A stretch of 64,000 nt of DNA from Podarcis erhardii (lineage: Eukaryota), in NCBI GenBank assembly GCA_964252035.1, contig OZ176200.1; one strand, 5' to 3'. This document shows, piece by piece, positions 5,616-16,622 of this stretch. The notes under the pieces were generated by a model that was not told the origin of the DNA, did not search any database, and saw only the letters and a list, made by a program, of their open reading frames with translations. Made by a program: the position numbers and the translations under genes. The first letter of the stretch is position 1; the number at the start of each line of letters is the position of its first letter.

Positions 5616-7571
5616 AATCATCAGTCCAATTCATCAGTGGAAGTTGTCTCCCGATGAATACAAGGTCCAAAATCCCCATGCCAGTCCCACCAGGCATTTC
5701 TGGCTAGTCTGGTTTGAGGTTAATGTCTGCCTCAGTTGCTACCCTCCTTTGATGACATAATTCCAGCCTCTTCTTGGGGTATTTTTCTTCTGTTACCTCA
5801 CAATATCTTCAGGCCCCTAAATGAAATGTAGTAGTTTTCTCTGTGGCTGGAAACCTGTCCAGGTTCTCCTGCCCATCAAAACAGAACTCAGTGTCACTAG
5901 TGTAGCTGTTGTTCTGCTTGCTTTCAATCAGGCATTTGATTAATTTCCTTCAAGAATACCTATACCGAATTCAGGTCAATTGGCCACACAATGCACTGGT
6001 GCAACTTCTGCTACAAGCAAAGAACATTCCTTTTGAGGCACAGTTGCAGCTTAGACATAGAGCCTACCTATGCATCCTTCCTGTGGTTTCAGTTCCACCA
6101 TACCATTACAACAGATGGCAGTAGACGGTGTACCATTCCCTGGCTGCGATTCAACACTGTCATTTCTTCTGGGGCAGCACAGCCCTTTTTAAGGCTCTGA
6201 TAAGGGCATCCTTTAACTCTTTGTTCCTCATGCTATAGATTAAGGGGTTCAGCACAGGAGTGACAAAGGTGTAGACCACAGACACCGCCCGACCTTCCTC
6301 TGGTGAGTAGCTGGAGCTGGGACGCAGGTATATCAAACTGCCACAGCCAAACTGCAGAAGGACGACCGTTAAGTGGGAGGAACAGGTGGAGAAAGCCCTT
6401 TGCCTGCCTGCAGCAGAGCTGATCCTCAAGACTGCAGCCACAATGAAGGCATAGGAGATACAGATTAGGAGGAAAGGGATGGTGATGACAGTAATGCTGA
6501 CAATAAAAAAGGCAGTTTGGTGGAAATGGGTATCGCCACATGCCAGTTTCATGACAACAGGAACATCACAGAAAAAATTATTGATTTCCTTATTGACACA
6601 GAAAGGCAAAGTCAATATCAAGACAGAGAGCTGAATGCCAAAGAAGCAACTCATGACCAAGGTCCCAACAACAATTTTCACACACACACTCCAGTTCATG
6701 ATGACAGTGTAGCTGAGCGGGTGACAGATTGCCACATAGCGGTCATATGCCATGATTGCTATCAGGACACAGTCAGAGCTTCCCAGGAAGATAAAGAAGA
6801 ACATTTGGGACCCACAGCCAGCCAGGGTGATGGAGACCTTTCTTGCAGAACCTACGTGGGCCAGAGTGAGGGGTGCAATGGTACAAGAATAAGCAATTTC
6901 CAGACATGCCAGGTTAGCCAAGAAATAGTACATTGGGGTGTGAAGAGAATGTGTGGTGTAGATGATGAGAACAATGGTAGCATTCCCAAACAGGCTGAGC
7001 AAGTAGAGAATCAGAAAAGTCCAGAAAATCAGCTGCCTCATGCCAGGGTGCGTTGTGAATGGCTGGAAGTGGAACTGTATAATTCCAGTTTGGTTTTCAG
7101 TCTCCATATAAACCTGCACATGAGCTTGCTATGGGTTAAGAGGAGAGAGGAGAACATTACTGAGAAGCCAGCATTGGGCAACCAGGAAATTAGGTAACAC
7201 AAATAAATTGAATTGCAACAAACAGGGAAGATGTTGCAAACTTGGCTGATAGTGAATGTGCAATTGATCAACATATCCTTTAATACTGAAGTTCAGACTT
7301 CTGTAGGCAGCTATTAACAAGAATGAGATCAGATTCTTAGAGTAGGTTGTTCACTGAGGTGTCTACATCCATTAAAATTGAGCGACTATTACAGTGCTTA
7401 TAAATGGCTAGGTTGATATTGAAATGTTTTACAAACCCAGCCAGATGGGCAGGATATAAATAATAAAATTATTAATATTACTTTTCTATACTATTATCTG
7501 TCTCTGGCTCCATCTTCTACAGACACCAATGTTAATGCCTTGGAGCTGTAGTCCTACACTATGGGCGCTAT
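5616..7571. repeat. Left outer arm of a large inverted duplication (partner 14667-16622)
   Basis: Mirror coordinates sum to 22238 at both arm ends and both OR ends (6160+16078, 7119+15119), so there are no indels over 1956 bp. ORF-track peptides from the two arms are identical outside TM3-TM5. Confidence 0.95.
6160..7107 (-). CDS. Olfactory receptor OR10V1-like, copy A, intact, 315 aa from the first ATG
   Basis: Motifs LHTPMY, MAYDRYVAICHPL, FFCD, RAFSTCSSHL and PVLNPLIYSMRNKELK, plus N-glycosylation site NQT. The ORF-track start at 7119 is a GTG; the first in-frame ATG is 7107. Confidence 0.95.
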   Translation of the reverse strand: METENQTGIIQFHFQPFTTHPGMRQLIFWTFLILYLLSLFGNATIVLIIYTTHSLHTPMYYFLANLACLEIAYSCTIAPLTLAHVGSARKVSITLAGCGSQMFFFIFLGSSDCVLIAIMAYDRYVAICHPLSYTVIMNWSVCVKIVVGTLVMSCFFGIQLSVLILTLPFCVNKEINNFFCDVPVVMKLACGDTHFHQTAFFIVSITVITIPFLLICISYAFIVAAVLRISSAAGRQRAFSTCSSHLTVVLLQFGCGSLIYLRPSSSYSPEEGRAVSVVYTFVTPVLNPLIYSMRNKELKDALIRALKRAVLPQKK

Positions 7572-7770
7572 TAACAAGAATGAGACCAGGTTCTTAGAGT
7601 AGGTTGTTCATTGATGTGTCTACATCCATTAAAACCGAGCAACTATTACACTGTCTCTAAATGGCTAGGTTGATTCTGAAATGTTTTACCATTTTTTATG
7701 TGCTGTAAGCCGCCTAGAGTGATTGTGAAAACCCAGACAGATGGGCAGGATATAAATAATAAAATAATAA
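7310..7770 (+). repeat. Local direct duplication (about 7310-7470 vs 7568-7770) ending in an L2-like tail
   Basis: ctattaacaagaatgag..cttagagtaggttgttca..gtctacatccattaaaa..aaatggctaggttgat..gaaatgttttac..cagatgggcaggatataaataataaa occurs twice. The first copy lacks about 45 bp. Confidence 0.8.
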
Positions 7771-7772
7771 AG

Positions 7773-7888
7773 CTCAACCAAAGAAAAAAGCTCAAGAACT
7801 CTGGGCAATCTCCCCCCATTTTCCTAATTTGGAGTCCCCCAAAATAGGGGGCGTCTTATACACAGGGACGTGTTATACATGGAAAAGT
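7773..7888. mobile_element. 3' part of a Tc2-like element, same family as 3887-4186
   Basis: aaagctcaagaactctgggcaatctcccccc..gagtcccccaaaa..gtcttatacacaggg..gttatacatggaaaagtacag matches 4083-4186. Confidence 0.6.
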
Positions 7889-14067: not shown

Positions 14068-14140
14068 CCAATTGTTGTTGTTGTTATTTATTGAATGTAT
14101 ATACCGCCCTATACCCAGGAGTCTCAGGGTGGTTCACAAA
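14068..14140 (-). mobile_element. L2-like LINE 3' tail fragment
   Basis: (ttg)n ttatttattgaatgtatataccgccctat..ctcagggtggttcaca resembles the squamate L2 3' end. Confidence 0.5.
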
Positions 14141-14666
14141 AAAGATCACAACATATATAATCAGAATAACCTAGATTGTTTCCCTCCCAGATTGACTTCC
14201 ATGCCCTTCTAGATACAAAACACATCTCTTTTCAGCCCCCAATCCAGTCCCAATTTTTGGAACACTTTCAATAAGCAGTTTTAAAATGTCACCACATAAT
14301 AGAATAATATATTATTTGTTGTATCTCTTTCCTATGTAATTCATTAGAAAGAAATCCCCTTTTGAGTCTATTAAGAGCTGCTGCACAAATTGCAAACTGC
14401 ACCATTGGATTGCTACCAATGGCTTCCCTAAAGCTACTTCATAGGTTAATAAACGGATTTGTACTTTTGTACTTTTGTACTTCATAGGTTATTACTTGGC
14501 AAATGTGTGCTATGAATACTTCCTACTACTGTACTTTCTTGTCAATCCCTTAACATAAAAGGTTCAGCAGGGGAGGGAGGATTTGTTGAGTAAGAGCTCC
14601 AAACCGACTTTTATTGCACAACCTGAATTTGTTGATACATGGCTGAAACCTGCTTGCAAAAAAGTG

Positions 14667-16622
14667 ATAGCGCCCATAGTGTAGGACTACAGCTCCAAGG
14701 CATTAACATTGGTGTCTGTAGAAGATGGAGCCAGAGACAGATAATAGTATAGAAAAGTAATATTAATAATTTTATTATTTATATCCTGCCCATCTGGCTG
14801 GGTTTGTAAAACATTTCAATATCAACCTAGCCATTTATAAGCACTGTAATAGTCGCTCAATTTTAATGGATGTAGACACCTCAGTGAACAACCTACTCTA
14901 AGAATCTGATCTCATTCTTGTTAATAGCTGCCTACAGAAGTCTGAACTTCAGTATTAAAGGATATGTTGATCAATTGCACATTCACTATCAGCCAAGTTT
15001 GCAACATCTTCCCTGTTTGTTGCAATTCAATTTATTTGTGTTACCTAATTTCCTGGTTGCCCAATGCTGGCTTCTCAGTAATGTTCTCCTCTCTCCTCTT
15101 AACCCATAGCAAGCTCATGTGCAGGTTTATATGGAGACTGAAAACCAAACTGGAATTATACAGTTCCACTTCCAGCCATTCACAACGCACCCTGGCATGA
15201 GGCAGCTGATTTTCTGGACTTTTCTGATTCTCTACTTGCTCAGCCTGTTTGGGAATGCTACCATTGTTCTCATCATCTACACCACACATTCTCTTCACAC
15301 CCCAATGTACTATTTCTTGGCTAACCTGGCATGTCTGGAAATTGCTTATTCTTGTACCATTGCACCCCTCACTCTGGCCCACGTAGGTTCTGCAAGAAAG
15401 GTCTCCATCACCCTGGCTGGCTGTGGGTCCCAAATGTTCTTCTTTACCTTCCTGGGAAGCTCTGACTGTGTCCTGCTAGCAATAATGGCATATGACCGCT
15501 ATGTGGCAATCTGTCACCCGCTCAGCTACACTGTCATCATGAACTGGAGTGTGTGTGTGAAAATTGTTGTTGGGACCTTGGTCACGAGTTGCTTCTTTGG
15601 CATTCAGCTTTCTGTCTTGATATTGACTTTGCCTTTCTGTGCCAATAAGGAAATCAATAATTTTTTCTGTGATTTCCCTGTTGTCATGAAACTGGCATGT
15701 GGCGATACCCATTTCCACCAAACTGCCCTTTTTATTACCAGTGTTATCATCATCACTATCCCTTCCCTCCTAATCTGTATCTCCTATGCCTTCATTGTGG
15801 CTGCAGTCTTGAGGATCAGCTCTGCTGCAGGCAGGCAAAGGGCTTTCTCCACCTGTTCCTCCCACTTAACGGTCGTCCTTCTGCAGTTTGGCTGTGGCAG
15901 TTTGATATACCTGCGTCCCAGCTCCAGCTACTCACCAGAGGAAGGTCGGGCGGTGTCTGTGGTCTACACCTTTGTCACTCCTGTGCTGAACCCCTTAATC
16001 TATAGCATGAGGAACAAAGAGTTAAAGGATGCCCTTATCAGAGCCTTAAAAAGGGCTGTGCTGCCCCAGAAGAAATGACAGTGTTGAATCGCAGCCAGGG
16101 AATGGTACACCGTCTACTGCCATCTGTTGTAATGGTATGGTGGAACTGAAACCACAGGAAGGATGCATAGGTAGGCTCTATGTCTAAGCTGCAACTGTGC
16201 CTCAAAAGGAATGTTCTTTGCTTGTAGCAGAAGTTGCACCAGTGCATTGTGTGGCCAATTGACCTGAATTCAGTATAGGTATTCTTGAAGGAAATGAATC
16301 AAATGCCCGATTGAAAGCAAGCAGAACAACAGCTACACTAGTGACACTGAGTTCTGTTTTGATGGGCAGGAGAACCTGGACAGGTTTCCAGCCACAGAGA
16401 AAACTACTACATTTCATTCAGGGGCCTGAAGGTATTGTAAGGTAACAGAAGGAAAATACCCCAAGTAGAGGCTGGAATGATGTCATCAAAGGAGGGTAGC
16501 AAATGAGGCAGACATTAACCTCAAACCAGACTAGCCAGAAATGCCTGGTGGGACTGGCATGGGGATTTTGGACCTTGTATTCATCGGGAGACAACTTCCA
16601 CTGATGAATTGGACTGATGATT
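14667..16622. repeat. Right outer arm of the inverted duplication
   Basis: Reverse complement of 5616-7571, same length. Confidence 0.95.
15131..16078 (+). CDS. Olfactory receptor OR10V1-like, copy B, intact, 315 aa from the first ATG
   Basis: Same OR motifs as copy A, with 11 amino-acid differences. The ORF-track start at 15119 is a GTG; the ATG is at 15131. Confidence 0.95.
   Translation: METENQTGIIQFHFQPFTTHPGMRQLIFWTFLILYLLSLFGNATIVLIIYTTHSLHTPMYYFLANLACLEIAYSCTIAPLTLAHVGSARKVSITLAGCGSQMFFFTFLGSSDCVLLAIMAYDRYVAICHPLSYTVIMNWSVCVKIVVGTLVTSCFFGIQLSVLILTLPFCANKEINNFFCDFPVVMKLACGDTHFHQTALFITSVIIITIPSLLICISYAFIVAAVLRISSAAGRQRAFSTCSSHLTVVLLQFGCGSLIYLRPSSSYSPEEGRAVSVVYTFVTPVLNPLIYSMRNKELKDALIRALKRAVLPQKK

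Follow-up and report, generated by a model that had tools for sequence, protein, structure and literature searches.

Two head-to-head olfactory receptor genes in a Podarcis erhardii palindrome: concerted evolution of the arms around a short copy-specific core in transmembrane helix 5

The stretch of DNA considered here, which we call the window, comprises 64,000 nucleotides of the lizard Podarcis erhardii (NCBI GenBank assembly GCA_964252035.1, contig OZ176200.1) and harbors a palindrome of about 11 kilobases (kb) with an intact olfactory receptor (OR) gene in each of its outer arms. As the site patterns found in four lacertids show, arm-to-arm gene conversion keeps the two receptors alike, the arms grouping by species outside a small core in the fifth transmembrane helix (TM5), where they group by copy. 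The genes and the parts of the palindrome are as follows (the last four have no strand):

6160..7107, minus strand: coding sequence (CDS) of OR gene A, 315 amino acids (aa) from its ATG, intact open reading frame (ORF), Pfam 7tm_4 178.9 bits
15131..16078, plus strand: CDS of OR gene B, 315 aa, intact ORF, Pfam 7tm_4 183.5 bits
5610..7571, minus strand: outer palindrome arm A, an inverted repeat holding OR gene A with an alpha-type TM5
14667..16628, plus strand: outer palindrome arm B, an inverted repeat holding OR gene B with a beta-type TM5
8019..9616: left inner arm, pairing with 12320-13860 at about 93.8% identity, with indels
12320..13860: right inner arm, pairing with 8019-9616
9617..12319: central spacer, unpaired, without inverted match
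7572..8018: unpaired repeat-derived stretch in the gap between outer and inner arm on the left, with very high-copy words nearby

Judged by their sequence, both palindrome genes are vertebrate class II olfactory receptors and are OR10V1-like. Their frames in the ORF track are intact over 319 codons (6160-7119, minus strand; 15119-16078, plus strand), that of gene A beginning four codons 5′ of the ATG, at the GTG of position 7119, and residues are numbered here on these frames. The 7tm_4 domain (PF13853) scores 178.9 and 183.5 bits with a cut-off of 27, and the single-exon ORF shows the class II hallmarks, namely MAYDRY at 123, FCD at 183, P215 and NPLIY at 291. The closest named proteins are the OR10V1-like proteins of Podarcis muralis, P. 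raffonei, Lacerta agilis and Zootoca vivipara.

The outer arms form an inverted repeat of 1962 base pairs (bp), 5610-7571 against 14667-16628, with 30 mismatches (98.6% identity). An earlier description of this locus, made from the letters of the window alone (the sequence-only reading), had these arms free of indels, and the repeat is indeed gap-free; it gave the outer arms as 1956 bp and made no mention of the inner arms, which bring each arm to about 4 kb and are a further part of the whole palindrome. Substitutions between the inner arms amount to about 4.5%, similar to the density of mismatches in the two islands described below (5.6% in the coding and 4.3% in the non-coding island). The inner edge of arm A (7306-7900) is repeat-derived, with a contig word depth of 1e5-1e6 at 7388-7474 and 7649-7900. 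This left side also carries a local duplication, 7306-7469 being copied at 7564-7765 with 89-97% identity, and the right arm is without such a copy.

The differences between the outer arms are gathered in islands separated by long identical tracts. The coding sequences of A and B differ neither before codon 110 nor after codon 216, and between these codons 18 substitutions, comprising 12 non-synonymous and 6 synonymous steps, give 11 replacements: I110T, I120L, M156T, V175A, V186F, F204L, V207T, I209V, T210I, V211I and F216S. This is exactly the count that the sequence-only reading had given. Its statement that the arms are homogenized everywhere except in the odorant pocket turned out to be wrong, however, since a second cluster of 10 differences lies in the non-coding 3′ flank and 2 more were found at the arm edge. 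The coding island is itself uneven, with 10 of its 18 differences packed into 38 bp (codons 204-216). When 28 differences were placed at random, the probability of a longest identical run of at least 780 bp was 1.5e-5, and 10 differences within 38 bp were reached in 0 of 20,000 permutations. The two identical tracts, of 780 and 506 bp, are longer than expected by chance. The islands and tracts are:

6473..6791, minus strand: coding island in arm A, corresponding to 15447-15765 in arm B, composite according to a site table over nine sequences
5735..5966, minus strand: non-coding island, corresponding to 16272-16503 in arm B, 10 differences, of which almost all occur on a single window arm
5967..6472, minus strand: 506-bp identical tract, corresponding to 15766-16271, 3′ CDS and proximal 3′ flank, B-type states on both arms
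6792..7571, minus strand: 780-bp identical tract, corresponding to 14667-15446, 5′ CDS and upstream flank, with 5 extra variants in a contig of sequencing run X16

Identical tracts of this kind could be produced by assembly or polishing, or be specific to one haplotype, the true arms differing throughout as they do in P. muralis. The evidence on this point came from Logan contigs, which give depth and the presence of variants along mosaic paths, with no phase and no spanning molecules. In the sample that holds the locus best, both runs gave the arms roughly double the word depth of the unique flank (9.6 in the flank against 17-18 in the arm for X15; 25.6 against 45-47 for X16), and a 1206-nucleotide X15 contig equals arm A, with 0 differences, over 6257-7462, that is across the island and the adjoining tracts. 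What speaks for an artefact is a 1206-nucleotide contig of X16, from the same sample, which has B-type states at 17 island sites together with five variants inside the tract assembled as identical (6844, 6845, 6851, 7071 and 7125). These contigs are unphased mosaics, however, and the X16 variants fit the other haplotype of the same individual equally well, which is probably what they represent; if so, the 5′ conversion tract is not fixed. Several of these extra variants equal the states seen in other lacertids (L. agilis, Zootoca or all four). As real conversion predicts, 11 derived sites private to the window species are present on both arms, and P. raffonei, in an independent assembly, is even more homogenized. 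Taken together, the depths, the exact contig and the shared private sites make an artefact improbable.

We compared the locus with that of P. muralis, P. raffonei, L. agilis, Zootoca, the skink Tiliqua and the cordylid Hemicordylus, aligned nine arm sequences and classified every variable site. The unique flanks of the window diverge by about 3.5% from both Podarcis species and by about 5% from L. agilis. In all three of these species we found the head-to-head pair, the layout of outer and inner arms and an identical outer boundary (~16623-16628), the identity of the outer arms being 94.8% in P. muralis, 98.7% in P. raffonei and 96.7% in L. agilis. Zootoca, Tiliqua and Hemicordylus have a single copy in the A position, followed in Zootoca and Tiliqua by the same downstream 313-aa OR gene. 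Zootoca is without the B arm: about 540 bp stand in place of window positions 11310-17161, and there is no inverted self-match. Two further sequencing runs bear on the number of copies. In run X1, from another taxon, alpha and beta are each present at about half depth, making it a further holder of the dimorphism. In run X18, from a close relative, a contig over window positions 5300-7432 crosses the boundary at 5610 without a break or a doubling of depth and only alpha was seen, so that this relative may have one copy.

Outside the core the arms evolve in concert. For the quartet formed by the arms of the window and of L. agilis, the outer arm contains 64 sites with a species pattern (A = B within species, differing between species) and 8 with a copy pattern. 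In a maximum likelihood (ML) tree of the arm outside the core, the species form clades with 100/100 support, and forcing a clade of A copies costs 172.6 log-likelihood units (lnL; approximately unbiased test, p-AU 8e-5). The non-coding-island partition (P5) also groups by species, and the inner-arm site patterns are of species type against Lacerta (24:3) and mixed within Podarcis. Paralogues within a species are thus closer to each other than orthologues are, though the duplication predates speciation, and since the 11 derived sites private to the window species are common to both arms, conversion must have acted after speciation. The grouping by species in the four lacertids bears out the proposal of the sequence-only reading that conversion between the arms keeps the receptors alike.

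The direction of the latest event can be read from diagnostic states. In the 3′ CDS tract, both window arms carry B-type states at 15812, 15888, 15913/16/19 and 15946, and the same is true of site 14784 in the 5′ tract; the latest conversion therefore ran from B into A. That the tracts are 100% identical would fit a single long conversion repaired in patches, and equally a small number of very recent ones. Both islands hold derived sites private to one window arm, in arm A at 15447, 15610, 15642, 15676, 16296, 16419, 16479 and 16503, and in arm B at 15484, 15585, 16308, 16432, 16439 and 16466. These one-arm differences are young mutations where recent conversion did not reach.

The core behaves differently from the rest of the arm and occurs in two forms, which we call alpha and beta:

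6489..6510, minus strand: core, alpha type, arm A; TM5 codons 204-211, positions 5x39-5x46
15728..15749, plus strand: core, beta type, arm B; states match the outgroups

Seven of the 8 copy-pattern sites of the quartet fall in this segment, and here the sequences of three species (that of the window, P. muralis and L. agilis) sort by copy. Over the 38-bp TM5 patch, the A copy of the window differs from that of L. agilis at 0 sites, from that of P. muralis at 1 and from its own B copy at 10; its core is identical to the L. agilis A core. Within the window and the fetched loci, the exact 27-nucleotide alpha core was confined to three A copies, those of the window, P. muralis and L. agilis; the exact beta core is carried by the B copy of P. 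muralis and by the two copies of P. raffonei. In the ML tree of 15659-15825, the A copies with Zootoca are separated from the B copies with both P. raffonei copies (support 100/98), and a tree constrained to join the two window arms is worse by 21.5 lnL (p-AU 0.012). A short segment grouped by copy is thus found amid flanks that sort by species. Which 40 bp are chosen entirely decides the gene tree obtained for these ORs.

The coding island as a whole is made up of this ancient core, of two old A/B sites and of about 7 young one-arm mutations. The old sites are 15674 (codon 186, V/F), common to the window and P. muralis, and 15476 (codon 120, I/L), common to the window and L. agilis. Species-pattern sites also occur inside the island (15520, 15550, 15582 and 15614), and since they lie in the part from TM3 to the second extracellular loop (ECL2), that part has been homogenized since the genera split. 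The prediction that the arms would cluster by copy throughout TM3-5 consequently holds for TM5 (15728-15749) and fails for TM3-ECL2. By these site patterns, the protected segment spans at least 22 bp, about 76 bp in Podarcis when codon 186 is included, with an upper bound of about 170-210 bp. The conversion-resistant or selected island of about 320 bp that had been proposed is thus reduced to a core of this size. Neither is resistance to conversion absolute, as P. raffonei has a converted core.

We polarized the changes with the skink and the cordylid as outgroups. Beta keeps the ancestral codons at 204, 207, 208 and 209, whereas alpha has six derived changes within 21 bp, all of them transitions, whose effects are L204F, T207V (in two steps), a synonymous change at S208, V209I and I210T; it is also derived at V186 and I120. 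Derived in beta are a synonymous change at codon 210, V211I and F216S, the last in Podarcis only. On these polarities the copy in the parental position is the one that changed. The single copy of Zootoca carries the derived alpha states, and it is beta that agrees with the outgroups; the simplest view is that the split into alpha and beta, and with it the duplication, is older than the Zootoca split. This suggests that the single copy reflects a later loss of B rather than the state before the duplication, which we set aside as less parsimonious. We dropped an attempt to date the duplication from the synonymous divergence (dS) of the core, 0.41, as only 9.5 synonymous sites lie beneath it.

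The sequence-only reading had stated that its account would fall if the island were a patch recently converted from a third paralogue. A diverged donor would indeed give a dense cluster that includes synonymous changes, such as the one observed. Yet the alpha and beta cores are base-for-base common across species, which is not expected of a recent patch, and the derived states are divided between the two copies. A protein search with residues 186-230 for a third paralogue with the alpha TM5 gave only A- and B-type clusters, pseudogenes being outside this search. The other ORs of the window, at 20-32 kb, were considered as donors and ruled out, being about 73% identical and having neither core haplotype. 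Since the alpha core is confined to A copies, no other cluster was returned and the paralogues in the window are of neither type, a recent patch is contradicted, and we regard it as very improbable. An ancient templated or multinucleotide origin of alpha is possible.

To place the differences in the receptor, we used R127 as 3.50 (the DRY arginine), C184 as 45x50 (the ECL2 cysteine) and P215 as 5x50 (the TM5 proline); TM5 aligns without gaps to consOR2 and to other solved ORs. The old differences map to 3.43, 45x52, 5x39, 5x42, 5x44, 5x45, 5x46 and 5x51. In the structure of Olfr412, a native class II receptor, residue 5x39 touches the odorant and its alanine mutant loses signaling, docking places longer odorants in contact with 5x44, and the residue at 5x51, F211, is packed onto Y6x48 in the FYGx motif (PMC13025043). 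S208 is found at 5x43 and fits the small residue reported to be typical of class II ORs there. By analogy with these structures, it is reasonable to consider that the core differences sit at odorant-pocket positions.

These observations can be assembled into the following scenario. An OR10V1-like gene was duplicated in inverted orientation before the split of Lacerta and Podarcis and, by polarity, also before the Zootoca split, giving rise to the 11-kb palindrome with two head-to-head intact genes. Non-reciprocal conversion between the arms, in lineage-specific patches, has since made the copies evolve in concert, so that they group by species. In the window lineage, the latest conversion of B into A made some 1.4 kb out of the 1.96 kb of the outer arm 100% identical and skipped two stretches, codons 110-216 and the 3′ flank. 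The coding stretch contains a much older element, namely the 22-bp core (codons 204-211), or about 76 bp with codon 186, plus codon 120, whose alpha and beta states are common to several species and through which the A copy probably gained a new ECL2/TM5 pocket surface (F186V, L204F, T207V, V209I and I210T).

We infer that the core persists mainly by selection against convertants that would merge the two pocket types, as in the "peak of divergence" model of Teshima and Innan, and on the sequence comparisons we consider such selection at the pocket positions (45x52, 5x39-5x46) to be the likeliest cause, with moderate confidence. The local mismatch density probably also hinders heteroduplex formation. 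The isolated old sites at codons 120 and 186 are retained as well, and the rest of the arm has been homogenized since the Lacerta/Podarcis split, whereas three species (L. agilis, P. muralis and that of the window) have kept the core and P. raffonei alone has lost it. Several points nevertheless weigh against selection. In P. raffonei the beta core is found on both arms with both ORFs intact, so that the core is not retained in every two-copy lineage and this species tolerates the loss of alpha. An older protein record of the P. muralis B gene combines the alpha TM5 with S216; either a conversion that includes the core is polymorphic in this species, or polishing with short reads has crossed between the arms in the older assembly. 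The dN/dS ratio (Nei-Gojobori), a check proposed by the sequence-only reading, is 0.55 for the whole coding island and 0.70 for the TM5 cluster and lends no support to positive selection, a search with low power on 38 bp. In the TM5 cluster, 3 of the 10 changes are synonymous, and the proportions of synonymous (pS) and non-synonymous (pN) differences are 0.32 and 0.24. The partition used for the core tree was picked after the site patterns had been seen. The non-coding island, moreover, is a stretch that conversion has skipped without any selection on the pocket. Two further features are either unfavorable or neutral: the spike of divergence is far narrower than the conversion tracts, and the recent identical tract stops exactly at the last site of the cluster (15765/15766).

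Part of this evidence is what a neutral mismatch barrier would predict. An ancestral burst of 6-10 changes in about 38 bp, through multinucleotide mutation or templated micro-conversion, would have raised local divergence to about 26%, and heteroduplex rejection would stop conversion tracts there with no selected difference in tuning. Both synonymous and non-synonymous differences are raised in the cluster, as the pS and pN values indicate, and the all-transition run of alpha, the narrowness of the spike beside identical tracts of 506 and 780 bp, the place where the recent tract ends and the loss of alpha in P. raffonei with intact ORFs would all agree with it. The conversion in P. raffonei crossed the patch, however, so the barrier is not absolute, and old sites outside the dense patch (codons 120 and 186) were kept in several lineages at pocket or lid positions. 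The homogenization of all other parts of the arm since the Lacerta/Podarcis split, with the core lost in P. raffonei only, also speaks against a barrier, which on balance we find the less likely of the two explanations.

If selection against convertants is indeed at work, the palindrome could be regarded, more tentatively, as a natural cassette system, in which scaffold, flanks and presumably regulation are shared and a pocket cassette of 22-76 bp (45x52 plus 5x39-5x46) is held in two selected states. Occasional conversions through the cassette would then produce chimeric or merged receptors, which would segregate, as the P. muralis record versions and the X16 variants may indicate, or become fixed, as in P. 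raffonei, yielding a ready-made allelic series with which the ligand specificity of ORs could be mapped to a few residues. For each P. muralis gene, the two record versions (P0128 / P0129 versus P0002; P0001 versus P0123) differ by 4 to 11 residues. In the window species, two natural receptors differ at 11 residues, with six old differences concentrated on ECL2 and TM5, and relatives add a merged version (P. raffonei, beta on both arms) and a single-copy version (Zootoca, alpha only). The locus is thus a compact and testable system for asking how a few pocket residues set the odorant tuning of class II ORs, and what shields diverged segments against gene conversion, selection or the density of mismatches.

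Elsewhere in the window, three direct repeats of about 5.5-6.4 kb, 93-96% identical, occupy 18400-35200. Each carries an intact OR of 313-320 aa (20087-21034, 25177-26139 and 31558-32499), about 73% identical to the palindrome genes, and this tandem array probably also evolves in concert. A long terminal repeat (LTR) retrotransposon at 44520-49487 has two 264-bp LTRs (44520-44783 and 49224-49487) that are 100% identical and an uninterrupted gag-pol-type ORF of 1376 aa (44897-49027, minus strand); the element seems to have been inserted very recently. ORFs resembling those of long interspersed nuclear elements (LINEs) occur within 37780-44488 (37780-38889, 39167-40713 and 42764-44488) and are interrupted at 41815-42525 by a GC-rich minisatellite with units of about 60 bp, whose self-matches are also inverted.

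Palindromes kept alike by gene conversion between their arms are well known from sex chromosomes, such as the human Y, where the arms are more than 99.9% identical. The lizard locus is similar to these in that a pair of genes lies on inverted arms, separated by a short spacer and kept alike by intrachromosomal conversion. It differs in that its arms are small (~4 kb) and do not reach that identity along their whole length (98.6% for the outer and 93.8% for the inner arms), in its position within an OR gene cluster, and in conversion that is patchy and lineage-dependent. Gene conversion within OR clusters has also been studied in primates. Islands of divergence between converting paralogues have been described for Tigriopus GOT1 (PMC3728101) and for Drosophila duplicates (PMC2588116). 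With these cases and with OR clusters, the palindrome shares conversion between neighboring paralogues and a mosaic identity, in which conversion-resistant islands are taken as pointers to functional divergence.

The closest parallel that we found is exon 5 of the primate red/green opsins (long- and middle-wavelength, LW/MW), where a peak of divergence under ongoing conversion is read as selection against convertants (Teshima & Innan 2008, as reviewed in PMC3924837). Both systems consist of neighboring duplicates that are homogenized, with flanks that group by species and a short coding stretch that groups by copy across species, holding chromophore-tuning residues in the opsins and putative ligand-tuning residues in the lizard. 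The lizard duplicates differ in being inverted rather than tandem and in having a single coding exon; their core is far shorter (22-76 bp), the effects of its residues are predicted, and one species has erased the island. In a non-exhaustive literature search we found neither a lacertid OR palindrome nor a trans-species OR pocket core under conversion described. The lizard locus is not a new kind of system, but a new, clean and experimentally tractable example of a well-described class.

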